The notes beneath the pieces were generated by a model. The model saw nothing but the letters and a program-made list of their open reading frames with translations. It searched no databases and had not been told where the DNA came from. A DNA stretch of 62,860 nucleotides, filler included, from Dicyema japonicum (taxonomy: Eukaryota > Animalia > Dicyemida): NCBI GenBank assembly GCA_011109175.1. It is 9 parts of 9 records of this genome, joined end to end, with 100 filler letters (N's around TTAATTAATTAA, not from the genome) between each part and the next. Parts side by side here need not be neighbours in the genome. Positions count along the whole stretch, not along the records: positions 21,149 to 41,101 come from RDEW01000116.1; 8 more parts are not named here. One strand, 5' to 3'. The position numbers and the translations under genes are program-made. Shown here piece by piece: positions 21,149 to 42,415 of this stretch (within the stretch, counting starts at the first letter, position 1; every line of letters begins with the position of its first letter).

Positions 21149-22081
21149 CGACGAATGTACAGTTATGTTATACATATAAGTGGCACTAGATGAGATTTGA
21201 ATCCATGATTTTTCTGAGTATTTTGCTATCATTTTTGACAGAATTTGGGTGATGGTTTGGTTGAAGCGTTCGACAATGCCTTACAAAAATGTATACGAAC
21301 AACTAAATACCTTGAGAACGAGGATTGTTCGGTCTTCCGTGAACTTGAATTACATTAAATTCATTGCTAAGTGTCCGAATGTCAAAATTTTTAAATTCTG
21401 TACCGTTGTCTGATTGTAAAATCATACAAGGTCCATGTTCATGAAATATGTTTTTTAATTGAAATGCAACCTAAATTAAATATATAATTTTTAAGAAGCA
21501 TCTTACTTCAAAGCCGGATTTGTTTTTTAATTTTCTAGTCATGGCAAACTTTGAATATACATCAATAACAGTGAGCATCCATTTGTATTCATCGTTGACA
21601 GAATAAAATCTTTTCAGATCAATAAGATCCATTTGAAATCTTTCATTTGGCTTTAACGCTATGATATGATTTTCTTGATCACTTATCTATTAAATATTAC
21701 CGAAAAACAAACTTTTAAAGGAGTAGAAAACTTACAGATTTCACATGAATTTATTACGGCCCGTATAACACTTCTTTTGACGTGGAAGTAATACTTATTG
21801 CATATATCCTCCATTTTATTCATTCCAAGATGCCCCTGGATATGGAGTGCGGAGATAAAAACTTGCATCTCTTTTTCATTATCCATGCAAATCACGAGCT
21901 TGTGATTTCCATTCGAATCTTTAAGATACATCTTCTCGTTAATCATTATTAATTTTTTCGGTTTTTGCAAGAGCCGGAATTTATTATGTTTGTTCGGAAT
22001 TGTAATCATTTCTTCTTTAAGGATTTGTTCAATTATTCGGTATTCATCCGAGCACTTTACGTAGCCTCTGTATGCAGACAT
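21149..22081 (-). CDS. Spliced HHCC-DDE integrase (Ginger/KRAB-A2-like DNA transposase), 3' end lost in gap
   Basis: Exons 22081-21713, 21686-21507, 21470-21311 and 21279-gap; introns of 26, 36 and 31 nt; spliced ORF open with H..GH..C..C, QMDLID, LQSDNGTEF and GIVERFN. Confidence 0.85.
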
Positions 22082-22339
22082 CTTTTTTGGAAAACACGCT
22101 ATTATTGGCCAGGTCACACCNAAAAAACTTAACATTTTTTAACTCTATTCATAGTAACTATCTTAGTTTCATTCTGTAATTCGATCTAAATGTTAGGAAA
22201 GACAACTAACCATTAATCTGTTATTAGACATTACATTTTTTACTTTTCCCTTTTCTTCATATGGGATTCAAATCTGTGTAGTTTCAATGAAGGATTCGTT
22301 CCATAATCTTTTAAGATTCGAACCTAAGCTGTTACTATT

Positions 22340-22830
22340 TAATTATACCTCATTCCCTATTTCAAAATCATATTTTGACTTGTGTACTCCCATTTTTTTA
22401 TTCATTCTTTTAAAATAAGATGAATTCATGTCTGGAGGAGTAAAATTAAAAATTTTATTATTCGTTTCTAAAAATAAATACATCGTAAATTTACCATTAA
22501 GTTCATCTTCTACAAACGATGCCTCATTATTTTCATCTAAATTATAAATGAAATTATAACCTGGTATTTCATTAATCACAGTGTTAATTCCAGAAATACC
22601 CCTAAACTTTTTGAATGGGGTCTCATTGATCGCCGTGTGATGTGTCGTATTATACGAAAAAGTTACTTTGTCTAAAAATTTTATTTTTTAAAGATTTACA
22701 GACTACGAATTTGCTGTAGATGTCAATGATGGTTAATATCAAATTATACCCCTCGTTAAAATCTTTATATCTTCTAACATCAATAAGATCCGCCTGGAAT
22801 CTTTCATTTGGACTTGTTGCCGTTACATGG
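22340..22830 (-). mobile_element. Integrase element remnant, same superfamily, deleted
   Basis: PNERFQADLID..LILTIIDIYSKF and SYNTTHHTAINETPF..FRG. Confidence 0.65.
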
Positions 22831-22854
22831 TAATTAGAATCGGATACCTAAGTA

Positions 22855-23350
22855 CAGTAAAACCTCTCCAATCCGCCGATTTTGGGACCGATCAAAAAAT
22901 CGGCGGATTCGAGAGGCAATTTAAATAATATTTTATAGTTGAAACATGAACTTACAATATAGATTAAATATTTCTTTTTATATACAAATGACTGAATACA
23001 TAAAATTATTTATATTCATAAAAATCAGAAATTTTATGTTTTTTATTTAATTTTCTTAACATTTCCCCAATTCGCATAATATTTTCGTGATCATCTATAT
23101 CTGCATTTACCTGAGAAGCATAAGTTTTAATAATCTCAAGAGCTCTGAAAGCTTCTAAAAGATTAACTCTTTTCTCATTTGATTCCTCTTCAATAATTGT
23201 TTCCTAAGTATAATTATTAAATAAAATCACTAACTGATTGAAATTTTTTTGACTGTAATGTATCAGCTTGTTCAGATTTTTCTAAAAATTCCATTAGCTC
23301 TTCATTTTCAGTATATCCATAATCANCATAAGAAATTATGAGAATGTAGT
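22855..23350 (-). mobile_element. pogo/Tigger-like 3' remnant
   Basis: TA|CAGTAAAACCTCT terminus with internal hairpin; minus strand VNLLEAFRALEIIK helix like the 10514 ORF. Confidence 0.55.
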
Positions 23351-23477
23351 TAATTAACTAACCGGATTATTCACTTTAATATTTCCTTGTTCCACTTAAT
23401 TTTCCCTGCATTGACATTAATGTGATTGATTATTCAATCCAATATTTCCTTGTTCCACTTGTTATTTCTAATTAGTG

Positions 23478-23960
23478 CAGGGGTGTCAAACATGCGGCCC
23501 TCGAGAAGCATAGGTGCGGCCCTCAGCGTACCTTGACAAGCATAAGTGCGGACTGAATCAATCTCTATAAAACACAAAAAATTATGTAATTATTTTTTAA
23601 ATTATTGATTAAAATTTTTAATAGTATTTGTAAATCGTGTTCGTCAATGTCACGTGCTTCTTCTGGAATTAAGAAAAGGTGTTTGAAAGATGAACGGAGA
23701 GTGTTTCAAGATAAATGGGAACTTCTCTATTTTTGTACAACGGTTGATGGAAAAATACACTGTTTAAGACTCACTTGTTCAAAGATATTTCATTATCAAG
23801 AAATACTGTTGCCGAACACATTAATGAAATGGCTTTGAATTTGAAACACCAATTAAAGTCTGAATTGTTAAAGTTCGAATATTTTTCAATTGCAATCGAT
23901 GAAACAGTCGACGTTGTTGGAATTGCACAATTAGCAATCTTTGTTAGAGCCATGGTTTTT
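23478..23960 (+). mobile_element. hAT transposon left part (SPIN/GTF2IRD2-like)
   Basis: TIR CAGGGGTGTCAAAC; RVFQDKW, ISLSRNTVA and FSIAIDET..QLAIFVR motifs. Confidence 0.8.
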
Positions 23961-23977
23961 CATTATAATAAATTTTT

Positions 23978-26900
23978 TATATTCCGCCTCCCGGCTCCTG
24001 TGCCAAAGAATTTACAGTGGATTTGTCCGCACTTGGCAAGGTGGAAAACTTGCTGGTTTCGGGGGATTTTAATGCCAAACACCCCTCATGGTATTGGAAA
24101 CAACCTCCAGATAAGAGGGGGAACCTAATAAATTCTCATTTGGAAAATCTGTGTGTTTCAAACGACCCAAGGAAGAACACTCGAACCCCTTACAACGAGA
24201 AAAATTCACTCACTTTACCCGATATTACTATTTGTTCATCACGACTGGCACCTCTTGTCCATTGGTCCGTCAATTTTGACTTGGGGAGCGATCACAATCC
24301 TATCAAAATCAATTGCTCCCCGTCAACCCGTTCAAAACATGCGGTATTTCACGATTACGATAATGCCTACTGGACAGGATATAAAAAATATGTTGATTCA
24401 TCCCTATGGAATTTTCATCCGCAGAATTTCAACTCCCTCGATATGGCAGTCAATTACTTTAACAAAGTTATCCTCAAGGGGAGAGATCTATTTGTCAGGA
24501 AAGGAGTCCTGAAACTCACGAAAAGAAAATACGACGCTAAAACAGTTAAACTAATAAAAGAAAGGAATTTCCTCAAAAGCAGTACACATTTGACAAAAGT
24601 TACAACGAGAAGGATTCGGGCACTGAACGTGGAGATCGCAGAAAGTGCGAGACGTTTACAAAAAAGAAAATTGGACACGATTTCCCGAGGGATGAACAAA
24701 AAGGGCTCACTTTCGAAAATGTGGAAGATGTTGCGTAACATTAAAAACGCCGACAGTACAAACGAGGATGACCATAATCTCCAACTAGATCTAAACACTT
24801 TTATAAAACATTGCGTGAAGATAAGTCACAAGTCTTATAAAAAATCGGAACCCCCCTCAATTATTAGAGGGAAACCGAAAAGGGAGCCTCCATTATCGTA
24901 CTTCCTACCTCGAGATGTCGCTGTAGAAATTTCCCGACTAAAGAATACACGCTCCTGCGGACCAGACGGAATCCCAGTGATCATGCTCAAAAAATTGGGC
25001 GATGCAGCTGTCTCTGCACTTACGAGTATTTACAATTACTCGTGCAACTTCAATACCATTCCAACATTATGGGAACTGTCGACTATTCACCCAATCCTGA
25101 AGCCTGGAAAACCGAAGGAGGATCCTGGATCATACAGGCCAGTGTCCCTTTTATGTGTCCAGACACGAATTCTAGAGAGAATGGTGATGACATTGATTCG
25201 TCCCCTCCTCCCAGAAGTCAGTTTTCAACATGGATTCAAAGAGGGGCGATCAACTGTCACACACCTAAATGCTTTAATGAAATTTATATCAGATGGTCTA
25301 AACAAAAAACCTAAACAGGAAAAATCCATTGTCTGCTCGATCGACATAAAGAAGGCTTTCGATTCGGTGCCAAGGAAAATACTCACACAAAAGATCTATT
25401 CCTCAAATATTGATACAAATCTAAAACTATGGCTTGGGAATTTCCTGAGCGGTCGTCGGGGAAGGGCTTGTTATGGAAACAGATCTTCCATATCGAGACT
25501 ATTACCAAATGGGGTCCCTCAGGGTTCTCCTTTATCTCCACTCCTATTCAATCTCATGATGAACGACCTACCACAGCCAGAAGAGGACAACGATCTGTTA
25601 TTATTATATGCAGACGATATTATCGTCGCATCAAGGGATGTGAGCATAATAGAAGCAACGCGTAGAATACAAGATAAACTTAACAATCTGAGTACATGGC
25701 TATATAAAAACGAACTGGAGGCAAGTCCGGAAAAATCTATTTTGACTTTGTTCACGAAAAACAGAAGGCTTGGGAAAGTTTCAATTGAAGCAAAGTTGGA
25801 CGGGAAAATTATACCTCAGAACAAAACCCAGAAGATTATAGGAGTTACCTTCGACACGTTTCTAACTTTTTCAACCCACGTCGAAAATGTAGTTATGGCG
25901 GGTACAAGAAAGGTTAACTTCCTGAAGGCTTTCCTGGGGAACGCAGGAGATTGCAAAAGCCTATATGGTCTAAACAACATATATAATCAATACGTGGAAC
26001 CTACGATNGGGAAAATTATACCTCAGAACAAAACCCAGAAGATTCTAGGAGTTACATTCGACACCTTTCTAACCTTTTCAACCCATGTCGAAAACGTAGT
26101 TATGGCGGGTACAAGAGAGGTTAACTTCCTGAAGGCTTTCCTGGGGTACGCAGGAGAATGCAAAAGCATATATGGTCTAAACCAGTGGTTCTCAACGTGG
26201 GCGATATCGCCCAAATGGGGCGATGAATTTTATGAGATGGGGCGATGGATTTTTAATTTGGGGCGTTCGATTTGGAATGAAAATTTTAAATATATTCTAT
26301 TAAATTTTTACTAATTCTTAGATAAAAAACAGTTTATTATAAAACCAAATTTAACTAAGGTTACGCTATTTAATTAAGATTTTCACTCTCTGTTGGAGAT
26401 CTCTCTCCTCCTTTTAGGTATTTAAAATTATTTTTAAACTTCAAACCTTTTTAAACGTCAAAGATAATGCAATTTTCTCAAAACATTTATTACGCTGAAA
26501 TCGGAAATAAATTCCAGTTTTCATGATATAATAAATATTCAAATTCCACGATGGATAATCAATCCATTTATTGTTGATATAGTTGAGTGTCCAATTCACT
26601 TGCGAAAAGAATTAATTCTTTTAAAAAATGACGAAGAACATGAATTCAGACACGAAAATTGTGAAATTTCAAAATTTTGGCAAAATAAAAATATAGAAGA
26701 AAATTTTCCTAGTCTTTGGAATGAAATAACCCCGATGTTATTATGTTTTCCTTCTTATTTAGTCGAAAGAGGATTTAGCCAATTAAAACATATTCTAACT
26801 ATGGAGAGAAACACGCTAAATATATGTGATCGTGGAGATATTCGACTCAATCTGAAAAATCTTATTTAGTCGAAAGAGGATTTAGCCAATTAAAACGTAT

Positions 26901-27581
26901 TCTAACTATGGAGAGAAACACGCTAAATATATGTGATCGTGGAGATATTCGACTCAATCTGAAAAATATAAAAGCAGATTGTGAAGCTCTATCAAATAAA
27001 CGTCAGTTCCAAGGGGCACATTAATTAAATTAATTGTCGTAACCTTTTGTTTCTTTTCACTTCTTTCGGAAAAAAATTAACTATTAATAGAAATTTTATA
27101 AAAAAAAATTTTACATTAATAAATCACAACGATAATTTTGGGGCGATGAAATATTTGGTTGGGCGATGAAAGTTCAAAAGGGGCGACGAGTAAAAAAGGT
27201 TGAGAACCCCTGGTCTAAACAACATATATAATCAATACGTGGAACCTACGATCGGCTATGCGTGTGGAATCTGGGGAACAAACTTAACTGCAAACAATCA
27301 ATCAAAAATCGACAAAATTCGGTTGAAAGCGGCAAACCTGCTAAATACATTTTCCGATAAAGAGATTATCCCAAAAGCCTGGAACAACATCATAAAGTCA
27401 TCTGCAATCTATCTACGAGAGGTTCGTCCTAGGAATCCCCGTCCGTACCGAAAATGCGTTGGGACAACGTCGGAACATCGGGAAAGGGTGCGCGAACTGC
27501 TGAGGGAGGCTGGGATCACCTGAATTCTTGTTTCTTTTGGCTATGACGGTGGTTTTCTGGTTCAATAAATAAATAAAAATG
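23978..27581 (+). mobile_element. ingi/Vingi-like LINE (APE-RT), 5'-truncated, interrupted by a hAT insertion
   Basis: Open from YIPP through GDFNAKH, DLGSDH, YRPVSLL, IDIKKAFDSV, PQGSPLSP and YADD; resumes at 27221 and ends EAGIT* (27523) with an (AATA)n tail; N join at 26007 may fuse two copies. Confidence 0.9.
26183..27212 (+). mobile_element. Non-autonomous hAT (Buster/Charlie-like)
   Basis: TIRs CAGTGGTTCTCAAC / GTTGAGAACCCCTG; 8-bp TSD GTCTAAAC; GGGCGA subterminal repeats; FPSYLVERGFS remnant. Confidence 0.92.
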
Positions 27582-27589
27582 TTCGTAAG

Positions 27590-27844
27590 ACGAAGCCGTA
27601 GGTCTCCTCTCTCAGCAACGTCTAAGCGGTTTCGACTTTGGTAACGAGTTGAGATACAACGCTAAAGCTTCTCTCAACCAAGTAAGAAGTAGGAAAAGCG
27701 ATAAACAATAATCTAATATCTTAATATAATCTAATATTTATAATTAATTTTCATCGCCCCCAGTAAACGATTTAGTCATAAACGCCCCCTTAAAATTTTG
27801 TATCGCCCTCAAGGGGGCGATATTGCCCACTTGGGGAAACCCTG
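27590..27844 (-). mobile_element. hAT (Buster-like) deleted remnant
   Basis: IAFPTSYLVERSFS..RGDLRLRLT; terminus CAGGG at 27844 with GGGCGA repeats. Confidence 0.6.
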
Positions 27845-28128
27845 ATTTAAACGAAAAACAGATACTTTGTTTATTATTAGCACTACGCGATGTCATCGGT
27901 CATGACCAGCCTGTGCAGCACCCAGGACAGCTTTCTCCATTTCGTTCTATTCCGACCTGCGTCTTCGAATATCCTACAAAACTAAAACTAGGTTTAATTT
28001 TGATTCGATAAAATTTGACCATTGTGATAAAAATGTGGTTTCCGCCGTGGTCACTTTAATTATTGAAGCTATTTAAATAAAAATTATTTACGTAGTTAAA
28101 TAGCTAAAAAATCATTCCGTTAAAAAAT

Positions 28129-29036
28129 ATGGACCTCACCTATGTCTATTATTTTAACACTGTTATGGTTTCATTAACAATAATAATTTCGTTCTCTTTG
28201 GCCATTTCGTTCTTTTATTTCTACGGAAATTCTTTCGATTTTGTATTTTCATTTTTATTTTGTTTTTTTTCAATTTTTTTAATCTTCGATTTCTTAACAA
28301 ATGAACCAGACTTTGGAGGTCTTTTAAATTTGTCATTTATTAGATATTCTTGGAGTAACGACTCTTCGTTATCTCTCAGCATTGTCTACTTGGTTATGGC
28401 TTTCATCCATATTTACTCTGATATTTATTGGCAGTTACTGGATCCGTTACGTAAGAAGTCGATCTTTTATACTATTAACAACTGGAAAAATTGTGACTAC
28501 CCTCACAATGATCATCATTTCAACGTTGCTTTTGGTTTTACCACGTTTTTGGACGTTACCTAAGAGAGTATTCAATTTCTTAACATTGACAGTTTGAAAG
28601 TATTAACCAGAAATATTTATATTATGCACTTCCAATAATTGAGGTGCCATTAATGTTTTTGATACTATTGATTGTTGGAATCGTTGGAAGCGTTGTTACT
28701 ATAGTGAACAGTGGTCCGTTACAGCTTTTTATTGAGATTGAAAACAAACGAGTCAGAGAGGTAGTGACGTATAAGTCTGATCGAATCATTTTGGTCTTGA
28801 TTTGGCTGACAATTATGCTTATTCCACGAAAACTCGTTGATTTTATTTTTAACTACCAATCCGAGTTTAATATTCAAGGACAATTTGGTAAGATTTTGAA
28901 CAAAAAGGATTTCTTTCAAACGGTTTTTTATGGATTTTATTTTTTAACTAATCTGATCGTCATTTTTAGCTATAGAAAGCTTTCCAATTTTGTTTTTTTT
29001 GGAAAAATCCGCACATTTTTCGTTTCGTTGATTTAA
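28129..29036 (+). pseudogene. Divergent 7TM rhodopsin-like (peptide-receptor-like) gene with two frameshifts
   Basis: Hydrophobic segments in three successive frames; IRY..VLPRFW (TM3-4), YYALPIIEVPL (TM5), IWL..LIP (TM6); about 300 codons in total. Confidence 0.5.
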
Positions 29037-29411
29037 CACTTCTTTATTAACTATTTTATTAAGAATTTCCATTTTAATTTAAAACGACTTAATTTAAGAA
29101 CGTCAACCAGTGAAGAATATCGGTTCCATCTTTCCTTTAGATCCGAACCAGCATCCCGATCTATAAACAATAGATTCTGGAGAGCTGATTTGAAAATTCG
29201 TTATTTCCCAATAAGAATATTTACATTTTTTTACCGGCATCAGTTTCATCGACGATTAAAAAAAATTTTTCGTTAATTAACAATTCGATTGTCCAATTAA
29301 AACGTCTCTCGGCCAAAATATTGGCATTGCTTTTACATTTTGATACTGAAGATAACTAGAATTCAATAGTATTAGAAAAAATTTATAAAAACAGGATTTC
29401 GTAGTTTATAT

Positions 29412-30304
29412 CAGCGGTTCTCAACCTGGGGTCGATTCGACCCCCTGGGGTCGAAAATCAACCCAGATCGACCGTAGGGGGTCGAAAATAAATTTCATAA
29501 TTTTAATTTTTTTCATTTTTAAATTAAGTTAGTTTATTTTTAAAGTGGTAAACCTTAAGTGGTAACCTTATTCTCCGATTCCAAGATATTCTTGAATTAG
29601 AAATTAATAAATTTCATAATTTTAATTTTTTTCCTTTTTAAATTAAGTTAGTTTATTTTTAAAGTGGTAAACTTTAAGTGGTAACCTGATTCTCCGATTC
29701 CAAGATATTCTTAAATTAGAAATTCCATCTTGGATGATTAATCCTTTTTTGTCAAAGCCAGAAGAAGAAAAAGATAATATTCAAGAGGAATTAATAATGT
29801 TAAAATTCAATCCATAATTAAAACTATATTATAATGATTCACAAACGCCAGTTATTTTTTGGCAAAATATGAAAGTAAAAGAGACTTATCCAAAATTGTG
29901 GAACGAAATAGCACAATTGCTCCTCTATTTTCCGACATCATACTGTGTTGAATGTGGATTTAGCATTCTACATCGAATAGTAAATAAAGAACGAAACAGA
30001 TTGGATGTGTCCATTAGAGAAGATTTTCGTTTGAAAATAACACAAATAGAGCCAGATATCAAATCTTTGGTTAAAAAACATCAGTCACAGGGGTCCCATT
30101 GGTATTTAATTGTTTTTATTATAGATTTATACTCAGATACTAACTTAACATCGAGTTTTTTTGTTTGATTATTAACAATGAATTCATTTTAGATGATTAG
30201 TTAACTAATTTTACTTATAGTTGTCTGTTTTATATAAAAAAGTTTTAAGGGGGTCGAAAAAAAAATCAAGGGGTCGACGAGTAAAAAAAGGTTGAGAACC
30301 CCTG
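29412..30304 (+). mobile_element. Non-autonomous hAT (Buster/Charlie-like)
   Basis: TIRs CAGCGGTTCTCAAC / GTTGAGAACCCCTG; 8-bp TSD GTTTATAT; GGGGTCGA subterminal repeats; FPTSYCVECGFS remnant. Confidence 0.92.
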
Positions 30305-31032
30305 GTTTATATAATGGAGCATTTGCTCAAACAAATTGAGCGAAAAAGCACTTGTACCAACAGTAGTAGGAAAAAACGTTCAAATCCTCTATTTAGCTTC
30401 GTTCATATGTGAATTTACAGAATGTTACACAAATAACGCATATATATCGAAATTTTCTCAATGAGGCTCCGTATTTCCACATGTTTTTCGTAATTTCCGG
30501 GATTCAGTCTCCAATCTTTTTAATTGGATTCCGTGAGTAAGGTTTCTGATGATTGTAAGTCTCAATGGCCAAAGGAATAACTTCTATGCTCTTTTCAACG
30601 TACTTCTCAAGTTTGATTTTTTAGTACGTTTATAAGATGCTTCGAGTTTAAAAAAATGTCACTTCAGGTTCATGTTCCAATATGTCTATATGTATTTAGC
30701 GTATCTGACCAGTCATCTTCGCTTTTTTAATGGAAAAATAATCGCTCCATTCGTTCTTTTTAAGTCGTCAGTGAAGATTCAACATGTTCCTGATGGAAGT
30801 AAAATCACGTTGTTTTCAGATTTGTTTCAGAGCGTCTTGACAAGAAAAACACCTAGTTTCAGTTTTCATTGAAAGAGAATCGTAGACAAATTGATCCGCA
30901 ACGACATTGCGCAGTCGAAGTTGACAACCGAGACCAACTTATACTCCAATTCTGACATCTTTGTCGTTCAGTTAAGTATCAGTTCCCGTGTATGGTTACA
31001 ATCGAGCTATGCAAGAATTGCTGAATGAATGA

Positions 31033-32043
31033 ATGATTATTTATTTACAAGAAAATTACCTTGGAGTATTGGAAAACATGGATAGCAGCGTCCTGAAAAA
31101 TGATACGATGACCTCAATCTCGGATGCAGTCGAGAAGAGGATTAATAGCCTGGCAGATTCGAAACTGAATTCTGCAAATTTTTTCAAGGCTGTCAATGAG
31201 CATGCGTTGTCCTTGTATAACTACTACATCGAGCTCATTGATATCGAACCATGCGAATTTGAGAATATTGACAAGAATGTGCGCAAGGTCTTGATAGGCC
31301 ACCAAATACACATGAAACCTGGAAACAAAGATAGACTTTATCTTCCAAGAGACCGACTAGGAAGAGGATTGGTCTCTGTGGTGCATAAAAGCGAGCGAAT
31401 GCTTCTCGAATTTCTCAAGGACATTGAGATGAAGGCGTCCTATTGTTTGAGGAAAGAGGGAATCCTGAAGGCCGTCAGATCAAAGAAAACACACATGGCC
31501 ACTATCAAGGAATTCCTATGCAGAAAGTACCAATTGGCAACTCCGGAAAGCCTCAAACTGAACGTTTTGAAGGATGTGCAAGGAAAGTACTTAATTGAGC
31601 AGATACGAAGAAAGCCCCTTCACTCGATTTTGTTTAATTGCTATGATGATTTGGACGTAGATCTCAAGGAATCGTCCTGGTAGTTATCGCATGGGAACAA
31701 CTCTCCAAGGTCGGAGGGAATGCTGTGTATGGTTCAGGACCGCAACTTATTCTTTGACAGCGGAGGTAGTAGTTGCAACCATTGCAACGCCGCCAAAAAG
31801 ACGGTGGATCATCTTGCTACAAGATGTGGCAGAATGTTGAACAGCGATTACCTGCGTCGCCACAATGAGGTGGTAAGGTGCATTCACTTGCACATCTGCC
31901 GACAATATGGGATAAAACAGTCTAGGAAGTTGAAGACCCACTCCGTTCAGTCGACTGTCTCTAATGAGGTGGTCGAAATACGGGTGGACACGACGATCAA
32001 GACGGATACTAAAGTCAATAATAATAAACCGGACATTTTTGTC
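31033..32043 (+). mobile_element. R2/R4-like (RLE-type) non-LTR retrotransposon, 3' half
   Basis: RLYLPRDRLGRGL; CNHC..TVDHLATRC CCHC finger; YLRRHNEVV; KPDIFV cut by gap; one in-frame stop at 31681. Confidence 0.85.
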
Positions 32044-32093
32044 NNNNNNNNNNNNNNNNNNNNNNNNNNNNNNNNNNNNNNNNNNNNNNNNNN

Positions 32094-32218
32094 CCAAGGC
32101 CACCATTACCTCACGTGAAATACAGACTGCAGTTCGGTTGATTCTTCCTGGTGAATTGGCAAAACATGCAATTACAGAAGGTGCAAAGGCAGTTACTAAG
32201 TACACGAATACAAAATAA
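32094..32218 (+). CDS. H2B: Histone H2B, 3' part (5' in gap)
   Basis: [40 protein letters not shown]. Confidence 0.9.
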
Positions 32219-32544
32219 CACTTTAAAAATAAATTTTCTATTGATTTGCTCCTAAAATAACTATTTCACCATCTAGCTAGTAATTTAACCTATAATCTTG
32301 AAAAAATTCATCAGCAAAGGCAGTGACTAAGTACACGAATACAAAATAACACTTTAAATTAAATGTTCTATTCATTTGCTCCCAAACTAACTATTTCACA
32401 ATCTAGCTAGTAATTTAACCTATAATCTTGAAAAAATTCATCAATTAAAACAATAATTACAATTATTATTGGTGTTGATAAAATATTAAAAAAGATATTT
32501 ATTTTTTTTAATTTAATAACGGTTAGTGATTCGACTTAAAAAAA

Positions 32545-32753
32545 TTTCGGAATGATACTTTTTTTGCATTACTCGAAATTTTTTCGGAATGATACTTTTC
32601 TGGTATATTAAATTTTTTTCATCCGCTAAAGATTTTTGTTTATATACTGAAAAAGTATCATTCCGAAAAAAATTTTCAAAAAAATTTCGGAATGATACTT
32701 TTTTTGCATTACTCAAAATTTTTTTCGGAAGGGGGTTTTTTTAACTATATAAA
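32545..32753. promoter_or_regulatory. H3 upstream region: four TTTCGGAATGATACTTTT motifs, one half motif and a TATA box
   Basis: Motifs at 32545(+), 32582(+), 32651(-), 32685(+); TTTCGGAA at 32723; TATATAAA at 32746. Confidence 0.75.
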
Positions 32754-32778
32754 CATTTTCATTTCAGGAAATACAAAA

Positions 32779-33189
32779 ATGGCAAGAACTAAACAAACAG
32801 CTCGAAAATCTACTGGGGCAAAAGTACCAAGGAAACAATTGTCTGCAAAATCTGCTCGCAAGTCTGTTTCACAACTTGGAGGAGTAAAGAAACCTCATCG
32901 ATTCCGACCTGGAGTCGTTGCAATGCGAGAAATTAGACGATACCAGAAGAGCACTGATCTGTTACTTCGAAAACTTCCATTCCAAAGACTCGTGAGAGAA
33001 ACCGCTCAGTTTATCAAAACCGATTTGCGTTTTCAATCGTCAGCGATTGTCGCTCTCCAAGAAGCGGCAGAGAGTTACCTTGTTGGAATTTTTGAAGACA
33101 GTAACTTGTGTGCAATTCACGGAAAAAGAGTAACCATTATGCCAAACGATATGCATTTATCGAGAAGAATTCGAGGTGAAAAAACATAA
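32779..33189 (+). CDS. H3: Histone H3 (divergent), copy 1
   Basis: [13 protein letters not shown]..; 136 codons; the ORF track's upstream extension is not used. Confidence 0.97.
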
Positions 33190-33658
33190 CTTGTGCGTTT
33201 TAATAAATAAAAAAATGATTTATTGTTTGGATAACTTATTTGAGATAATTTTAATGTTTTTGCATTTGTAGAAAATGTAATGTTGAACTTTTTTTAAATA
33301 AATAGATGATGTTCGTTGTGTATTTTAGAGAAAAATGTAATTCATTTTGTTTGATATGGATTTGGTTGATAATTCATATATACAAACGAAAACCTACAAC
33401 ATTTTTTGGTTTATTTTGCCTAATAGGTAAATAAATTCTATTGGACGAAAGAAATATTTCGTCAACGGAAAGTTTTGTGCCTAAAATAAAAAAATATTTT
33501 GATATTTCATCTAAACTTACTTCTAAACGTTTATTGCGTTTGAAATTATTCGAAACTCGTTAAACGAATATCAAAACCGAACTTAACCGGTAGATCGATT
33601 GTATTTCGAGAACAATATTACAAAATAACAGTGTTTTATTCAAATATATTATTTAAAG

Positions 33659-34018
33659 TTAAGTAGTTGGTTTAGGAGTTTCTGCAGTCTTCCGAATCAT
33701 AAATCCGCCAGATGAAATAATAGCTTTCTGAGTTAATTCTTTTAATTCGTCGTCATTTCCAATTGCAACGACGATGTGACGTGGTTTAATTCTTCTTTTT
33801 CCACATTTTACTGCTGTATTTCCAGCGAGTTCAAGCATTTCAGCCACAGCATATTCCAAAACTGCGCACATGTATACTGCTGCAGGAATTCCTACTCGCA
33901 TTCGGGTTTCGTGGCGAAGACACCGGTGAATGCGTCCAACTGGAAACTGCAACCCTGCCCGGATCGATTTGCTTTTAGCCTTTGACCGTACTTTTCCTCC
34001 TTTTCCTCTTGAAGACAT
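33659..34018 (-). CDS. H2A: Histone H2A (divergent, short), copy 1
   Basis: [13 protein letters not shown] and ELAGN motifs; 119 aa. Confidence 0.96.
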
Positions 34019-34150
34019 TATATTATCATCCGCAAACGATTTTTGTTTATATACTGAAAAAGTATCATTCCGAAAAAAATTTTCAAAAAAATTTCGGAAT
34101 GATACTTTTTTGCATAGGTTCAAAATTATGTTTTTTATCGAATTTTTGTA
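34019..34150. promoter_or_regulatory. Bidirectional H2A/H4 promoter with an inverted motif pair
   Basis: 132-bp spacer; AAAAGTATCATTCCGAAA at 34058 and TTTCGGAATGATACTTTT at 34092; minus-strand TATATAAA ahead of H2A. Confidence 0.75.
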
Positions 34151-34459
34151 ATGTCAGGACGTGGTAAAGGTGGAAAAGGAGGAAAGAGTGGTGCAAAACG
34201 ATTTCGAAAGATATTAATCGACAATATACAAGGAATTACTAAGCCAGCAATTAGAAGACTATGTCGAAGAGGAGGTGTTCGAAGAATTTCTGGCAAAATT
34301 TACGAGGAGACACGTTCTGTCCTTAAAATTTTTATTGAGCAAACTGTTCGTGATTGTATTTCTTACACCGAACATGCAAAAAGAAAAACTGTTATTGCAA
34401 TGGATGTTGTTAATGCCTTGAAACGTCAAGGTCGGACAATTTACGGATTTGGTGGATAA
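34151..34459 (+). CDS. H4: Histone H4 (divergent), copy 1
   Basis: [27 protein letters not shown]; 102 aa. Confidence 0.97.
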
Positions 34460-34464
34460 TTCAT

Positions 34465-34865
34465 ACTTAACTTTGATAATAAAATATATTGCTATTCTTT
34501 ACAAAATTACAATAGAAAAATAGGCAATCTCATAAATTTAATAACGAAAGAGAGTCATATATTGCGTATTGTCAAAGATTCGTGTGAGAAATGTTGCATA
34601 CATAACCTTGATAATAAAATATATTGCTCTTCTTTACAAATTAACAATAGAAATATAGGCAATCTCATAAATTTAATAACGAAAGAGGATCATATATTGC
34701 GTTTTGTCAAAGATTCGGGTTAGAAATGTTGTCATACATAACTTTGATAATAAAAATATTGCTATTCTTTACAAATTAACAATAGAAAATAGGAAATCTC
34801 ATAAATTTAATAACGAAAGAGGGTCATATATTGCGTTTCGTCAAAGAATCGGGTGAGAAATGTTT
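34465..34865 (+). repeat. Three imperfect ~135-bp repeats starting at the H4 3' UTR
   Basis: AAC(T/C)TTGATAATAAA at 34469, 34604 and 34740; present in every unit. Confidence 0.85.
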
Positions 34866-35003
34866 TGGAAAAGACAAGAAGTATTTTATATATTATTGTA
34901 TATTTTTACAGAAAATTAGAGTAATATCGTTTAAAGAATTTATAAAAATTAAATTTATTCATTTTTATTAAGAAATATTTAATTTGCTTATATTTCAAAA
35001 AAA

Positions 35004-35072
35004 TTTCGGAATGATACTTTTTTTGCATTACTCAAAATTTTTTTCGGAATGATACTTTTCTGGTATATTAAA
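35004..35072 (+). promoter_or_regulatory. H2B promoter: two direct motif copies plus a TATA-like box
   Basis: Motifs at 35004 and 35042; TATATTAAA 8 nt after GATAC. Confidence 0.75.
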
Positions 35073-35104
35073 CATTTTCCTTAAAGGACTGACGAATTTT
35101 GATA

Positions 35105-35470
35105 ATGGCACCTAAAGTTAGTACAAAAGGACAAAAAAGAGCTGCTATTAAAACCAAAAATGTTTCTGTTGCAACAAAGAAAAAGAAGAAAAAGAAAACT
35201 TTTTCAATATATCTAATGAAAATTTTAAAGACGGTGCATAATCAACTTGGAATGTCAAAGAAGGCTATGATGGCTATGGACAGTTTCACATTCGATGTTT
35301 ATGACAAAATAAAAACCGAGGCTTCAAATCTGGTATATCAGAATTCCAAGGCCACCATTACCTCACGTGAAATACAGACTGCAGTTCGGTTGATTCTTCC
35401 TGGTGAATTGGCAAAACATGCAATTACAGAAGGTGCAAAGGCAGTTACTAAGTACACGAATACAAAATAA
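35105..35470 (+). CDS. H2B: Histone H2B (divergent), copy 1
   Basis: [28 protein letters not shown]; 121 aa. Confidence 0.96.
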
Positions 35471-35695
35471 CACTTTAAAAATAAATTTTCTATTGATTTG
35501 CTCCTAAAATAACTATTTCACCATCTAGCTAGTAATTTAACCTATAATCTTGAAAAAATTCATCAGCAAAGGCAGTGACTAAGTACACGAATACAAAATA
35601 ACACTTTAAATTAAATGTTCTATTCATTTGCTCCCAAACTAACTATTTCACAATCTAGCTAGTAATTTAACCTATAATCTTGAAAAAATTCATCA
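35437..35695 (+). repeat. Tandem ~130-bp duplication of the H2B last codons and 3' UTR
   Basis: GCAAAGGCAGT(T/G)ACTAAGTACACGAATACAAAATAA..TTCATCA occurs twice; the same pair recurs after the other two H2B copies. Confidence 0.85.
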
Positions 35696-36030
35696 ATTAA
35701 AACAATAATTACAATTATTATTGGTGTTGATAAAATATTAAAAAAGATATTTATTTTTTTTAATTTAATAACGGTTAGTGATTCGACTTAAAAAAATTTC
35801 GGAATGATACTTTTTTTGCATTACTCGAAATTTTTTCGGAATGATACTTTTCTGGTATATTAAATTTTTTTCATCCGCTAAAGATTTTTGTTTATATACT
35901 GAAAAAGTATCATTCCGAAAAAAATTTTCAAAAAAATTTCGGAATGATACTTTTTTTGCATTACTCAAAATTTTTTTCGGAAGGGGGTTTTTTTAACTAT
36001 ATAAACATTTTCATTTCAGGAAATACAAAA

Positions 36031-36441
36031 ATGGCAAGAACTAAACAAACAGCTCGAAAATCTACTGGGGCAAAAGTACCAAGGAAACAATTGTCTGCAA
36101 AATCTGCTCGCAAGTCTGTTTCACAACTTGGAGGAGTAAAGAAACCTCATCGATTCCGACCTGGAGTCGTTGCAATGCGAGAAATTAGACGATACCAGAA
36201 GAGCACTGATCTGTTACTTCGAAAACTTCCATTCCAAAGACTCGTGAGAGAAACCGCTCAGTTTATCAAAACCGATTTGCGTTTTCAATCGTCAGCGATT
36301 GTCGCTCTCCAAGAAGCGGCAGAGAGTTACCTTGTTGGAATTTTTGAAGACAGTAACTTGTGTGCAATTCACGGAAAAAGAGTAACCATTATGCCAAACG
36401 ATATGCATTTATCGAGAAGAATTCGAGGTGAAAAAACATAA
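36031..36441 (+). CDS. H3: Histone H3, copy 2
   Basis: Protein identical to copy 1. Confidence 0.97.
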
Positions 36442-36910
36442 CTTGTGCGTTTTAATAAATAAAAAAATGATTTATTGTTTGGATAACTTATTTGAGATAA
36501 TTTTAATGTTTTTGCATTTGTAGAAAATGTAATGTTGAACTTTTTTTAAATAAATAGATGATGTTCGTTGTGTATTTTAGAGAAAAATGTAATTCATTTT
36601 GTTTGATATGGATTTGGTTGATAATTCATATATACAAACGAAAACCTACAACATTTTTTGGTTTATTTTGCCTAATAGGTAAATAAATTCTATTGGACGA
36701 AAGAAATATTTCGTCAACGGAAAGTTTTGTGCCTAAAATAAAAAAATATTTTGATATTTCATCTAAACTTACTTCTAAACGTTTATTGCGTTTGAAATTA
36801 TTCGAAACTCGTTAAACGAATATCAAAACCGAACTTAACCGGTAGATCGATTGTATTTCGAGAACAATATTACAAAATAACAGTGTTTTATTCAAATATA
36901 TTATTTAAAG

Positions 36911-37270
36911 TTAAGTAGTTGGTTTAGGAGTTTCTGCAGTCTTCCGAATCATAAATCCGCCAGATGAAATAATAGCTTTCTGAGTTAATTCTTTTAATTC
37001 GTCGTCATTTCCAATTGCAACGACGATGTGACGTGGTTTAATTCTTCTTTTTCCACATTTTACTGCTGTATTTCCAGCGAGTTCAAGCATTTCAGCCACA
37101 GCATATTCCAAAACTGCGCACATGTATACTGCTGCAGGAATTCCTACTCGCATTCGGGTTTCGTGGCGAAGACACCGGTGAATGCGTCCAACTGGAAACT
37201 GCAACCCTGCCCGGATCGATTTGCTTTTAGCCTTTGACCGTACTTTTCCTCCTTTTCCTCTTGAAGACAT
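36911..37270 (-). CDS. H2A: Histone H2A, copy 2
   Basis: Protein identical to copy 1. Confidence 0.96.
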
Positions 37271-37403
37271 TATATTATGATCCGCTAACGAATTTTGTTT
37301 ATATACTGAAAAAGTATCATTCCGAAAAAAATTTTCAAAAAAATTTCGGAATGATACTTTTTTTGCATAGGTTCAAAATTATGTTTTTTAGGGAATTTTT
37401 GTA

Positions 37404-37712
37404 ATGTCAGGACGTGGTAAAGGTGGAAAAGGAGGAAAGAGTGGTGCAAAACGATTTCGAAAGATATTAATCGACAATATACAAGGAATTACTAAGCCAG
37501 CAATTAGAAGACTATGTCGAAGAGGAGGTGTTCGAAGAATTTCTGGCAAAATTTACGAGGAGACACGTTCTGTCCTTAAAATGTTTATTGAGCAAACTGT
37601 TCGTGATTGTATTTCTTACACCGAACATGCAAAAAGAAAAACTGTTATTGCAATGGATGTTGTTAATGCCTTGAAACGTCAAGGTCGGACAATTTACGGA
37701 TTTGGTGGATAA
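37404..37712 (+). CDS. H4: Histone H4, copy 2 (LKM instead of LKI)
   Basis: One Ile>Met difference from copies 1 and 3. Confidence 0.96.
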
Positions 37713-38358
37713 TTCATACTTAACTTTGATAATAAAATATATTGCTATTCTTTACAAAATTACAATAGAAAAATAGGCAATCTCATAAATTTAATAACGA
37801 AAGAGAGTCATATATTGCGTATTGTCAAAGATTCGTGTGAGAAATGTTGCATACATAACCTTGATAATAAAATATATTGCTCTTCTTTACAAATTAACAA
37901 TAGAAATATAGGCAATCTCATAAATTTAATAACGAAAGAGGATCATATATTGCGTTTTGTCAAAGATTCGGGTTAGAAATGTTGTCATACATAACTTTGA
38001 TAATAAAAATATTGCTATTCTTTACAAATTAACAATAGAAAAAGAGGAAATCTCATAAATTTAATAACGAAAGAGGGTCATATATTGCGTTTCGTCAAAG
38101 AATCGGGTGAGAAATGTTTTGGAAAAGACAAGAAGTATTTTATATATTATTGTATATTTTTACAGAAAATTAGAGTAATATCGTTTAAAGAATTTATAAA
38201 AATTAAATTTATTCATTTTTATTAAGAAATATTTAATTTGCTTATATTTCAAAAAAATTTCGGAATGATACTTTTTTTGCATTACTCAAAATTTTTTTCG
38301 GAATGATACTTTTCTGGTATATTAAACATTTTCCTTAAAGGACTGACGAATTTTGATA

Positions 38359-38723
38359 ATGGCACCTAAAGTTAGTACAAAAGGACAAAAAAGAGCTGCT
38401 ATTAAAACCAAAAATGTTTCTGTTGCAACAAGAAAAAGAAGAAAAAGAAAACTTTTTCAATATATCTAATGAAAATTTTAAAGACGGTGCATAATCAACT
38501 TGGAATGTCAAAGAAGGCTATGATGGCTATGGACAGTTTCACATTCGATGTTTATGACAAAATAAAAACCGAGGCTTCAAATCTGGTATATCAGAATTCC
38601 AAGGCCACCATTACCTCACGTGAAATACAGACTGCAGTTCGGTTGATTCTTCCTGGTGAATTGGCAAAACATGCAATTACAGAAGGTGCAAAGGCAGTTA
38701 CTAAGTACACGAATACAAAATAA
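38359..38723 (+). pseudogene. H2B: Histone H2B, copy 2, 1-nt deletion (pseudogene or sequencing error)
   Basis: 365 nt versus 366; one A is missing at GCAACA(A)AG in the lysine run. Confidence 0.8.
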
Positions 38724-39182
38724 CACTTTAAAAATAAATTTTCTATTGATTTGCTCCTAAAATAACTATTTCACCATCTAGCTAGTAATTTAACCTATAA
38801 TCTTGAAAAAATTCATCAGCAAAGGCAGTGACTAAGTACACGAATACAAAATAACACTTTAAATTAAATGTTCTATTCATTTGCTCCCAAACTAACTATT
38901 TCACAATCTAGCTAGTAATTTAACCTATAATCTTGAAAAAATTCATCAATTAAAACAATAATTACAATTATTATTGGTGTTGATAAAATATTAAAAAAGA
39001 TATTTATTTTTTTTAATTTAATAACGGTTAGTGATTCGACTTAAAAAAATTTCGGAACGATACTTTTTTTGCATTACTCGAAATTTTTTTCGGAATGATA
39101 CTTTTTTTGCATTACTCTCAAAATTTTTTCGGAAGGGGGTTTTTTTAACTATATAAACATTTTCATTTCAGGAAATACAAAA

Positions 39183-39593
39183 ATGGCAAGAACTAAACAA
39201 ACAGCTCGAAAATCTACTGGGGCAAAAGTACCAAGGAAACAATTGTCTGCAAAATCTGCTCGCAAGTCTGTTTCACAACTTGGAGGAGTAAAGAAACCTC
39301 ATCGATTCCGACCTGGAGTCGTTGCAATGCGAGAAATTAGACGATACCAGAAGAGCACTGATCTGTTACTTCGAAAACTTCCATTCCAAAGACTCGTGAG
39401 AGAAACCGCTCAGTTTATCAAAACCGATTTGCGTTTTCAATCGTCAGCGATTGTCGCTCTCCAAGAAGCGGCAGAGAGTTACCTTGTTGGAATTTTTGAA
39501 GACAGTAACTTGTGTGCAATTCACGGAAAAAGAGTAACCATTATGCCAAACGATATGCATTTATCGAGAAGAATTCGAGGTGAAAAAACATAA
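39183..39593 (+). CDS. H3: Histone H3, copy 3
   Basis: Protein identical to copy 1. Confidence 0.97.
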
Positions 39594-40062
39594 CTTGTGC
39601 GTTTTAATAAATAAAAAAATGATTTATTGTTTGGATAACTTATTTGAGATAATTTTAATGTTTTTGCATTTGTAGAAAATGTAATGTTGAACTTTTTTTA
39701 AATAAATAGATGATGTTCGTTGTGTATTTTAGAGAAAAATGTAATTCATTTTGTTTGATATGGATTTGGTTGATAATTCATATATACAAACGAAAACCTA
39801 CAACATTTTTTGGTTTATTTTGCCTAATAGGTAAATAAATTCTATTGGACGAAAGAAATATTTCGTCAACGGAAAGTTTTGTGCCTAAAATAAAAAAATA
39901 TTTTGATATTTCATCTAAACTTACTTCTAAACGTTTATTGCGTTTGAAATTATTCGAAACTCGTTAAACGAATATCAAAACCGAACTTAACCGGTAGATC
40001 GATTGTATTTCGAGAACAATATTACAAAATAACAGTGTTTTATTCAAATATATTATTTAAAG

Positions 40063-40422
40063 TTAAGTAGTTGGTTTAGGAGTTTCTGCAGTCTTCCGAA
40101 TCATAAATCCGCCAGATGAAATAATAGCTTTCTGAGTTAATTCTTTTAATTCGTCGTCATTTCCAATTGCAACGACGATGTGACGTGGTTTAATTCTTCT
40201 TTTTCCACATTTTACTGCTGTATTTCCAGCGAGTTCAAGCATTTCAGCCACAGCATATTCCAAAACTGCGCACATGTATACTGCTGCAGGAATTCCTACT
40301 CGCATTCGGGTTTCGTGGCGAAGACACCGGTGAATGCGTCCAACTGGAAACTGCAACCCTGCCCGGATCGATTTGCTTTTAGCCTTTGACCGTACTTTTC
40401 CTCCTTTTCCTCTTGAAGACAT
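40063..40422 (-). CDS. H2A: Histone H2A, copy 3
   Basis: Protein identical to copy 1. Confidence 0.96.
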
Positions 40423-40553
40423 TATATTATGATCCGCAACGATTTTTGTTTATATACTGAAAAAGTATCATTCCGAAAAAAATTTTCAAAAAAATTTCGG
40501 AATGATACTTTTTTTGCATAGGTTCAAAATTATGTTTTTAGGGAATTTTTGTA

Positions 40554-40862
40554 ATGTCAGGACGTGGTAAAGGTGGAAAAGGAGGAAAGAGTGGTGCAAA
40601 ACGATTTCGAAAGATATTAATCGACAATATACAAGGAATTACTAAGCCAGCAATTAGAAGACTATGTCGAAGAGGAGGTGTTCGAAGAATTTCTGGCAAA
40701 ATTTACGAGGAGACACGTTCTGTCCTTAAAATTTTTATTGAGCAAACTGTTCGTGATTGTATTTCTTACACCGAACATGCAAAAAGAAAAACTGTTATTG
40801 CAATGGATGTTGTTAATGCCTTGAAACGTCAAGGTCGGACAATTTACGGATTTGGTGGATAA
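40554..40862 (+). CDS. H4: Histone H4, copy 3
   Basis: Protein identical to copy 1. Confidence 0.97.
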
Positions 40863-42415
40863 TTCATACTTAACTTTGATAATAAAATATATTGCTATTC
40901 TTTACAAAATTACAATAGAAAAATAGGCAATCTCATAAATTTAATAACGAAAGAGAGTCATATATTGCGTATTGTCAAAGATTCGTGTGAGAAATGTTGC
41001 ATACATAACCTTGATAATAAAATATATTGCTCTTCTTTACAAATTAACAATAGAAATATAGGCAATCTCATAAATTTAATAACGAAAGAGGATCATATAT
41101 TNNNNNNNNNNNNNNNNNNNNNNNNNNNNNNNNNNNNNNNNNNNNTTAATTAATTAANNNNNNNNNNNNNNNNNNNNNNNNNNNNNNNNNNNNNNNNNNN
41201 NATGATTTTAGAGAATTATAGCGGATCAATCGCCTTCTACAAAAAAATTAAAAAAAGTTGTTTCAGATATCCCAATCACTTTTCTAGCTCTCTTGAATTC
41301 CTTAAATGTGGATTGAATAAGCGAGTAAAGGTCGAATATTGATTAATGCCTGTCTATGTTAAGACCCTCAGAAAACATTGTTATGTGCAGATATGTTCCA
41401 CGTGTATAATGGGCTCATTCCTCATCCGTACATTAAATAAAGGGATTTTTACATATGTGTAAACCACATTGCCCAAAAAGGAGTATTTATTTGAAATTGA
41501 GAAAAAATCATATATTAATCATAAACTGTGTCCCAGTGGAAGCATTCCGATCTACTATGAATAATCGTGTCCACATCGTAGAACTCCCATTAGGATTCCT
41601 CTCAAGATACAGCAAGGTCACTTTCTGAGAGCAGTTTAGTGGCTGGTGGGAAACTCAAGAAGAGTTGGGAACTTTTGAAGACTAGAGTCACCTAATCAGT
41701 TGGTTTAACATTTCTTTCTTGGTAGTTTCTTGGTCTAATAATAATGTGATCATCAGCATACCCCCGACGTAATCATTACTCATTGGGGAAGTTAGAAAAA
41801 AATTTAATTCACTTACAAAAATCTAAAAGATTAGTTAAGTTGGAGAAATTCTAAAAATAATTTTGCTTCTGTTTCAAGTAAACAATAAAGTTTGAAATAA
41901 GCGACGAAATAGAGTCATCTCAAATGTATCCACCCCCTCTCCTCCAGGAAGTCAAACGGATCAAATTTGAAAATCAATGCGTTCCAGTTTATAAAGTAAA
42001 ACAGTGTTTATGGTTTCGCACATGCCAAGTTTGCGACTATTAGCCTTCTCCATCCATTTGTCGTCTTGCTTGCCTACTGATTTCGTCAAGATCATCTGCA
42101 TCCATAATTCGGCCCTCGATCACAGCATAATCATCTCCAAAACGCTTATCTGTGGAACTAAAAAATTTATGAAATCATTTTGATAACAGCGTCACCACAT
42201 TATTGGTTTACTTAAAAATATTTGGAGATAAAATAATATTTAATAAAACCAGACGAACAAATTCAAAGATAAATAGAAACAGAAAAAATACAACAAAGAC
42301 AAGAACCAAAACGCCATTCAAAAGCGCTATTTTAGTATGTCACATGGGCGGCGCGTAACGCATGGGCAGCCTGTTACATTTTTTCGACCTTGAAAAGGTC
42401 TTTTGACTATCCGAC

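Follow-up and report, generated by a model that had tools for sequence, protein, structure and literature searches.

A tandem array of intronless core histone genes without the 3′ stem-loop in a genome sequence assigned to Dicyema japonicum

Organization of the histone gene array

The stretch of DNA analysed here (the window; 62,860 nt, along the whole of which all coordinates are counted) includes a piece at positions 21149–41101 that corresponds to RDEW01000116.1 of Dicyema japonicum and carries a tandem array of genes for the four core histones H3, H2A, H4, and H2B. This report concerns the array and, in particular, the 3′ ends of its genes. Its repeat units were delimited by alignment with MAFFT, the open reading frames (ORFs) recurring with a period of 3,252 bp. 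The units, and the genes of the first of them, are the following.

32776–36027: tandem unit 1, 3,252 bp
36028–39182: tandem unit 2, head to tail after unit 1
39183–41101: tandem unit 3, incomplete, the piece ending inside it
32779–33189, + strand: H3 gene, 136 amino acids (aa), intronless; Pfam PF00125 at 1.5e-40
33659–34018, − strand: H2A gene, 119 aa, three cysteines; identified by Pfam, homologue search, and PDB
34151–34459, + strand: H4 gene, 102 aa, two cysteines
35105–35470, + strand: H2B gene, 121 aa; identified by Pfam and PDB

All four proteins were assigned to the histone fold by Pfam. The histone ORFs are uninterrupted and intronless, and they are intact in 10 of the 11 complete genes of the piece; the unit contains no H1 gene. 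According to the MAFFT alignment, the units are ~99.5% identical to each other, with few single-nucleotide polymorphisms and indels and one 102-bp deletion. The interval 33187–35490, which a first-pass annotation of this DNA had described as a tandem histone cluster, is the core of the 3,252-bp unit, and the description was borne out by the four intact ORFs found there, by their Pfam assignments, and by the presence of at least three copies of the unit, arranged head to tail. The 102 bp at 35835–35936 are missing from the spacer between units 2 and 3.

The 3′ flanks of the histone genes

The 16-nt histone 3′ stem-loop, expected within ~100 nt of the stop codon in metazoan replication-dependent genes, is absent from all four genes. 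The first-pass annotation had reported that the four 3′ flanks lack this hairpin and had proposed a scan with the Rfam model RF00032 (Histone3) as a check. With permissive Rfam filters and a cutoff of E ≤ 10, this model matched nowhere in the piece, and in the related loci (125 kb, described below) no match reached the gathering score. When up to three mismatches to the stem-loop consensus GGYYYTTHTNARRRCC were allowed, 20 matches were obtained, compared with 39 expected from shuffles, and none of them was located in a 3′ flank. A scan of the flanks found no hairpin with a stem of at least 5 bp common to them, and the first 80 nt after the stop codon folded no better than shuffles in each of the 11 flanks tested (z from −0.04 to +0.77). 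With the Rfam, pattern, hairpin, and folding scans all negative, the original observation stands. Rfam also gave no match to U7 in the 20-kb piece.

AATAAA hexamers were identified downstream of all four stop codons, as listed below for unit 1.

33202–33211, + strand: two overlapping AATAAA, 12 and 16 nt after the H3 stop codon, followed by TTTATTGTTTGG
33635–33640, − strand: AATAAA, 18 nt after the H2A stop codon (reading TTTATT on the + strand)
34478–34483, + strand: AATAAA, 18 nt after the H4 stop codon
35480–35485, + strand: AATAAA, 9 nt after the H2B stop codon

The distances measured agree with those of the first-pass annotation (12, 18, 18, and 9 nt for H3, H2A, H4, and H2B, respectively), and the hexamers are intact in every unit. 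Their conservation could be assessed in other versions of the quartet, which were retrieved by protein look-up (L001 and related loci, L003, and L010).

L001, L002, and L004–L009: unplaced contigs of 14.7–100 kb in GCA_006345805.1 (Octopus sinensis)
VCDQ01010301.1, VCDQ01006861.1, VCDQ01007076.1, VCDQ01011424.1, VCDQ01010311.1, VCDQ01007429.1, and VCDQ01010617.1 (GCA_006345805.1): related arrays on the contigs of L001, L002, and L004–L009, which bear VCDQ contig names and not NC_ chromosome names
L003: DF945167.1, 1–2255, in GCA_000949405.1, an assembly of the ant Vollenhovia emeryi; gene order H2A (−), H2B (+), H4 (+), and H3 (+)
L010: Logan contig of run ERR12370323

The H3 hexamer is conserved 11–12 nt after the stop codon in L001 and L010, and the H4 hexamer is conserved at 18 nt (L001), 10 nt (L003), and 13 nt (L010). 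Equivalents of the H2A hexamer lie at 11 nt (L003) and 13 nt (L010), and those of the H2B hexamer at 14 nt (L003) and 11 nt (L010). AATAAA is found 10–14 nt after the stop codon in all seven complete genes of L003 and L010, and 9–18 nt after it in 11 of 11 genes when those of the window are included, despite saturated synonymous sites and diverged flanks.

Because AATAAA is frequent in AT-rich DNA, the first-pass annotation had cautioned that the hexamers might be there by chance. The chance background was estimated from random sites in the array spacers (77% A+T), scoring AATAAA that starts 5–20 nt downstream. The probability was 0.054 per flank, giving ~8e-6 for four of four flanks and, on the assumption that the three diverged array versions are independent of each other, ~1e-14 for 11 of 11; neither these values nor the conserved positions bear the caution out. 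The T content 8–38 nt after the hexamer is 0.45, compared with 0.34 in the background, a difference of ~3 standard errors (n = 11) that is suggestive, in DNA of 77% A+T, of a U- or GU-rich downstream element. In the flanks compared, AATAAA appears to be the only element that is conserved across array versions. We conclude that the hexamer is a selected signal rather than a product of chance, because its position has been kept in array versions whose synonymous sites are saturated and whose flanks have diverged. The first-pass annotation had suggested that these cluster histones are polyadenylated; the missing hairpin and the conserved hexamers on which this was based are confirmed, and polyadenylation of the messages is likely, being the best reading of the sequence.

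The messages might instead end at a strongly diverged hairpin, or at some other element missed by the Rfam model and the scans. The histone 3′-end pathway can be remodelled, as it has been in nematodes. Covariance models trained on canonical hairpins are also less sensitive to diverged ones (bioRxiv 10.64898/2026.10.14.759114). However, the flanks share no stem of the required length, all of those tested fold like shuffles, and the hexamer is the sole element retained between versions, which makes an overlooked hairpin very improbable.

The 3′ ends of two genes are duplicated, as detected with Tandem Repeats Finder.

34461–34864, + strand: 135-bp tandem repeat, three copies, starting directly after the H4 stop codon (91% matches)
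35435–35695, + strand: 130-bp tandem duplication, two copies, taking in the 3′ flank of H2B and the final 36 nt of its coding sequence (93% matches)

Each 135-bp copy repeats the segment that contains the H4 poly(A) signal, and the second 130-bp copy has ATTAAA in place of AATAAA. The H4 and H2B 3′-end duplications recur at 37714–38118, 38688–38948, and 32183–32443, so that several copies of the poly(A) signal stand in series.

Histone proteins

The proteins encoded here depart from ordinary metazoan histones. The H4 of the array shares only 79% identity with the canonical protein over residues 17–102, and its tail is one residue shorter; H3 is ~79% identical to the best solved H3.1/H3.2, as counted from the PDB alignment; and for H2A, identity to the canonical protein did not exceed 62% in the homologue search. 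Despite this divergence, the closest solved structures are canonical. The best PDB matches of H3 are canonical H3.1/H3.2 at 1e-67, with H3.3 chains scoring almost equally, and by inspection the protein has SAIV where H3.3 has AAIG. The best match of H2A is canonical H2A, H2A.J and H2AX chains also being matched, and the best full-length matches of H2B are canonical H2B at 2.6e-37. By inspection, the C-terminal end of H2B also appears to be of the animal kind. The genes appear to be of canonical type and not replacement variants such as H3.3, CENP-A, or H2A.Z, a candidate explanation that we rejected because the closest solved structures are canonical and the genes are tandem and intronless. 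A histone set of viral origin or acquired by capture was also rejected, because it agrees neither with the quartet layout nor with N-terminal tails of animal type. The source organism is an animal, whether dicyemid or octopus, because the best solved H2A and H2B are of animal canonical types and a non-LTR (long terminal repeat) element adjoins the array.

Between the window and L001, the synonymous divergence (dS) of H3, H2A, and H2B is 0.23–0.33, and the ratio of nonsynonymous to synonymous divergence (dN/dS) is 0.013–0.049. Comparisons of one array version with another give saturated dS or values above 1.4, at an amino-acid identity of 71–94%. The dN/dS values indicate strong recent purifying selection; the proteins are functional, though unusually divergent.

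Canonical H4 and H2A are without cysteine. H4 and H2A contain two and three cysteines, respectively, in the window and, by our own count, four and six in L003, in which the two genes lie within 190–552 and 1380–1688. The extra cysteines could reflect disulphide-linked chromatin or drift in a fast-evolving lineage.

Promoters

A 14-nt element, TTTCGGAATGATAC, recurs upstream of the histone genes.

34054–34115: divergent H2A/H4 promoter with an inverted pair of TTTCGGAATGATAC (34062–34105)
32545–32698: TTTCGGAATGATAC upstream of H3, at 32545, 32582, 32655, and 32685
35004–35055: TTTCGGAATGATAC upstream of H2B, at 35004 and 35042

The piece contains 20 copies of the element, all of which are in histone promoters, at one to four per promoter and often as inverted pairs; units 2 and 3 have them at the corresponding positions. 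Equivalent sites are present in the promoters of L003 (GTGCTTCCG(G/C)GAAAAA) and L010 (GGCTTGCGGCTAAAAA or CTGGCGAAAAT), and TATA-like boxes lie ~30–45 nt before the ATG codons. TTTCGGAATGATAC is a putative shared promoter element. Its resemblance to an E2F site is only loose in the window and somewhat closer in the versions of L003 and L010, and one might guess that S-phase control is exerted by transcription through it. Matches of microRNA models to the promoter palindromes were far below the Rfam gathering scores and were rejected.

Related arrays in other assemblies

The exact H4 of the window and an H2A 98% identical to that of the window are encoded on at least eight contigs of GCA_006345805.1, where they bear the RefSeq names ‘histone H4-like’ and ‘histone H2A-beta, sperm-like’. 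At the DNA level, these contigs are only 84–94% identical to the window. No record was found for the exact H3 protein of the window. Matches to the divergent H2A family were confined to O. sinensis contigs of at most 100 kb, one contig of the ant assembly, and one Logan contig, and the H2A search found no member of the family in other annotated octopus genomes. The flanks of the arrays in the window, L003, and L010 hardly align.

The genes of L003 are annotated as ant genes. This locus is almost certainly the result of cross-contamination between libraries, because X5 (2015), the fifth run in which the array was found, with 248 Mb of contigs at a base depth near 37, fits the ant, which was sequenced at the same institute, and the histone pieces in it have a depth of only 2–4. 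The O. sinensis contigs with related arrays may likewise be contamination, in this case by a parasite.

Runs X1–X4 (2019, four runs of one sample, with Nextera adaptor ends) contain the unit, and most of the contigs concerned are at least 99% identical to the window. Their year, number, and adaptor sequence suggest that they belong to the D. japonicum project. In these runs, where bins of the quartet versions are at least 88% alike, contigs of other versions reach a depth ~30 times that of the version in the window. The hairpin-free organization is not confined to one minor array, because these deeper versions exist and AATAAA without a hairpin is also seen in L003 and L010.

Origin of the array

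The D. japonicum material was taken from the renal sac of O. sinensis, and the genome project used four Nextera mate-pair and four SMART-Seq/Nextera XT libraries, assembled with Platanus, SSPACE, and GapCloser, which agrees with the single Ns and the gap of 50 N in the piece; contigs covered by octopus gonad reads were discarded (PMC6736024, PMC6854800). The published genome has 48.9% repeats and a mean intron length of 38.2 bp (PMC6736024, PMC6854800). The part of the piece to the left of the array, and its border with the array, have the following features.

24017–26314: ORF of a non-LTR retroelement with endonuclease and reverse transcriptase, containing an internal 207-bp duplication (25802–26182)
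28129–28554 and 28593–29036: two long ORFs for a hydrophobic protein, which a candidate 38-nt GT..AG intron (28555–28592) would connect in phase
32044–32093: scaffold gap of 50 N between the transposon-rich left part and the histone array

The left part also has several ORFs that were left unassigned and, by inspection, appears to contain fragments resembling an integrase and hAT transposases. The 38-nt candidate intron has the mean size reported for D. japonicum. The two-exon ORFs (28129–29036) had no Pfam match, and their exons, searched separately in the ESM Atlas, gave no usable match. Among 5.8 billion proteins, the closest relatives of the reverse transcriptase are only 35% identical to it and none is named as octopus, which is weak evidence against an octopus origin. 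A truncated H2B end with its 3′ repeat lies immediately to the right of the gap, indicating that the array reaches it.

It is probable that the array DNA comes from a dicyemid mesozoan, either D. japonicum or a co-infecting relative, and not from the octopus. Octopus vulgaris and O. sinensis split only 2.5 million years ago, and Japanese and Chinese O. sinensis should, for this reason, be nearly identical in their DNA. The identity of 84–94% between the window and the contigs labelled O. sinensis is below this, which argues against the octopus as the source of either.

The alternative is that the array belongs to the octopus itself, as a lineage-specific, divergent set of polyadenylated variants used, for example, in the germ line or embryo, with stem-loop histones elsewhere on the chromosomes. 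The RefSeq-annotated contigs of GCA_006345805.1 that encode the same H4 and nearly the same H2A are what would be expected from such a set; histone genes have expanded in Octopoda, with clusters on two to three chromosomes (PMC12210499), and a specialised state of the chromatin would be in keeping with the additional cysteines of H4 and H2A. However, every octopus-labelled contig is unplaced and diverged from the window to the extent given above, other annotated octopus genomes yielded no H2A orthologue although the subfamilies are old, and the adjacent reverse transcriptase has no octopus relatives among those found. Runs X1–X4, which match the window at 99% or more, are also small (69–187 million letters, longest contigs 8 kb), unlike what would be expected from deep sequencing of a 2.7-Gb genome. 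In addition, the co-divergence of four genes in several ancient tandem families is less economical than a single fast-evolving organism. An octopus origin of this kind therefore seems unlikely. No paper linking octopus with SLBP, the protein that binds the stem-loop, was found; histones are not mentioned in the dicyemid papers that were word-searched, and the supplements of the Dicyema paper contain neither histones nor SLBP.

Comparison with known histone gene systems

The layout resembles that of the sea urchin early genes, the 5-kb unit of Drosophila, and the repeat of Mytilus, in all of which an intronless core quartet of a few kilobases, with one divergent gene pair, is arranged head to tail and homogenised. 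Unlike the array described here, in which a stem-loop was looked for and not found, those invertebrate arrays have an SLBP-bound stem-loop and a purine-rich U7 element; the present unit also differs in the absence of H1 and in its far more divergent proteins. In plants, dikaryan fungi, and ciliates, as here, bulk histone genes bear poly(A) signals but lack the hairpin, and any coupling to replication would have to be transcriptional. Those organisms are not animals, however, whereas the proteins, quartet layout, and retroelements found here are of animal type.

Mytilus histone genes carry both signals. Polyadenylated mRNA has also been described from replication-dependent cluster histone genes of animals (Lyons et al. 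2016, PMC5100578; for Drosophila maternal mRNA, PMC11997800), and AATAAA lies downstream of such genes, as it does here. Such dual-signal genes keep the stem-loop, with the poly(A) site beyond it, whereas nothing precedes the hexamer in the present array. Replacement histone genes (H3.3, H2A.Z, and Drosophila H4r) share polyadenylated mRNAs with the messages predicted here, but they are dispersed and of low copy number, usually with introns and with variant-specific residues, in contrast to the tandem, intronless, canonical-type genes of the array.

Proposed explanation

The best overall explanation, to which we assign a probability of about 0.6, is that the tandem, intronless, hairpin-free quartet with its polyadenylated messages represents the ordinary histone genes of a dicyemid. 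The histone messages would be made by ordinary cleavage and polyadenylation and not by SLBP/U7 processing, and their 3′ untranslated regions would be very short (~25–50 nt). Any coupling to replication would have to be achieved by transcription, through the promoter element common to all of the genes, or by hairpin-independent mRNA turnover. The DNA would be that of a fast-evolving dicyemid parasite of O. sinensis, the divergent proteins would be the ordinary histones of this parasite, and the arrays in the octopus and ant assemblies would be contamination.

Several observations weigh against this explanation. On PacBio contigs of up to 100 kb, the genes of related arrays carry an O. sinensis annotation, and contamination by a parasite would be hard to explain if the PacBio DNA came from muscle. 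The histone array is joined to the left part of the piece only via the gap of 50 N, the linkage resting on scaffolding and not on continuous sequence. Of the L001 genes, those for H3 and H4 retain the hexamer, whereas AATAAT stands in its place in H2A and H2B. Copies that are truncated, frameshifted, or interrupted by transposons are numerous on the related contigs. The H2B gene of unit 2 (38359–38725, beginning with the ATG at 38359) is out of frame beyond codon 24, one nucleotide of an A run near 38430 being deleted; this could represent a real pseudogene or a homopolymer assembly error. The depth in run X1 is flat (~380–520) over genes and spacers, which corresponds to DNA or to a silent locus in complementary DNA libraries carrying genomic DNA, and none of the runs listed for the stretch is recorded as RNA.

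The last three of these points, together with the ~30-fold greater depth of the paralogous type in X1–X4, would also be expected of a silent or decaying repeat family, that is, a satellite derived from histone genes in which the hexamers are functionless relics. Against such decay, the low dN/dS at the modest dS between the window and L001 for H3, H2A, and H2B points to recent purifying selection. Moreover, only one of the complete genes in the piece is not intact, its frameshift falls within a homopolymer, a kind of sequence prone to assembly errors, and both the promoter elements and the hexamers are intact in every unit. Decay is improbable on these grounds, and the ordinary-histone explanation given above is preferred.

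Implications for dicyemid histone biology

Replication-dependent histone genes of animals are regarded as universally ending in the 3′ stem-loop. In a 2026 survey of 2,281 metazoan species, this hairpin was consistently present and tightly positioned, and the survey names no animal lineage without it, dicyemids not being mentioned (bioRxiv 10.64898/2026.10.14.759114). The first-pass annotation had also raised a possible loss of SLBP, U7, and Lsm10/Lsm11. Because the DNA described here is probably dicyemid, such a loss throughout the lineage becomes plausible. We consider it tentatively, at somewhat less than an even chance, that dicyemids as a whole have dropped the stem-loop, SLBP, and U7 and polyadenylate their tandem bulk histones; they would be the first such animal group, and ‘octopus’ annotation would include parasite genes.

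What follows depends on the source of the DNA. If it is that of the octopus, the array would be a divergent extra histone set from which nothing follows for SLBP or U7, because octopus clusters are chromosomal (PMC12210499) and the histone mRNAs of one bivalve mollusc that was studied carry hairpins (PMC6210712). If the related arrays in the octopus assembly are parasite DNA, counts of cephalopod histone genes would be distorted and the reported expansion in Octopoda would possibly be inflated. A lineage that has dispensed with the stem-loop, if this is true of dicyemids, would provide a natural experiment on how the supply of histones is matched to DNA replication without SLBP and U7.

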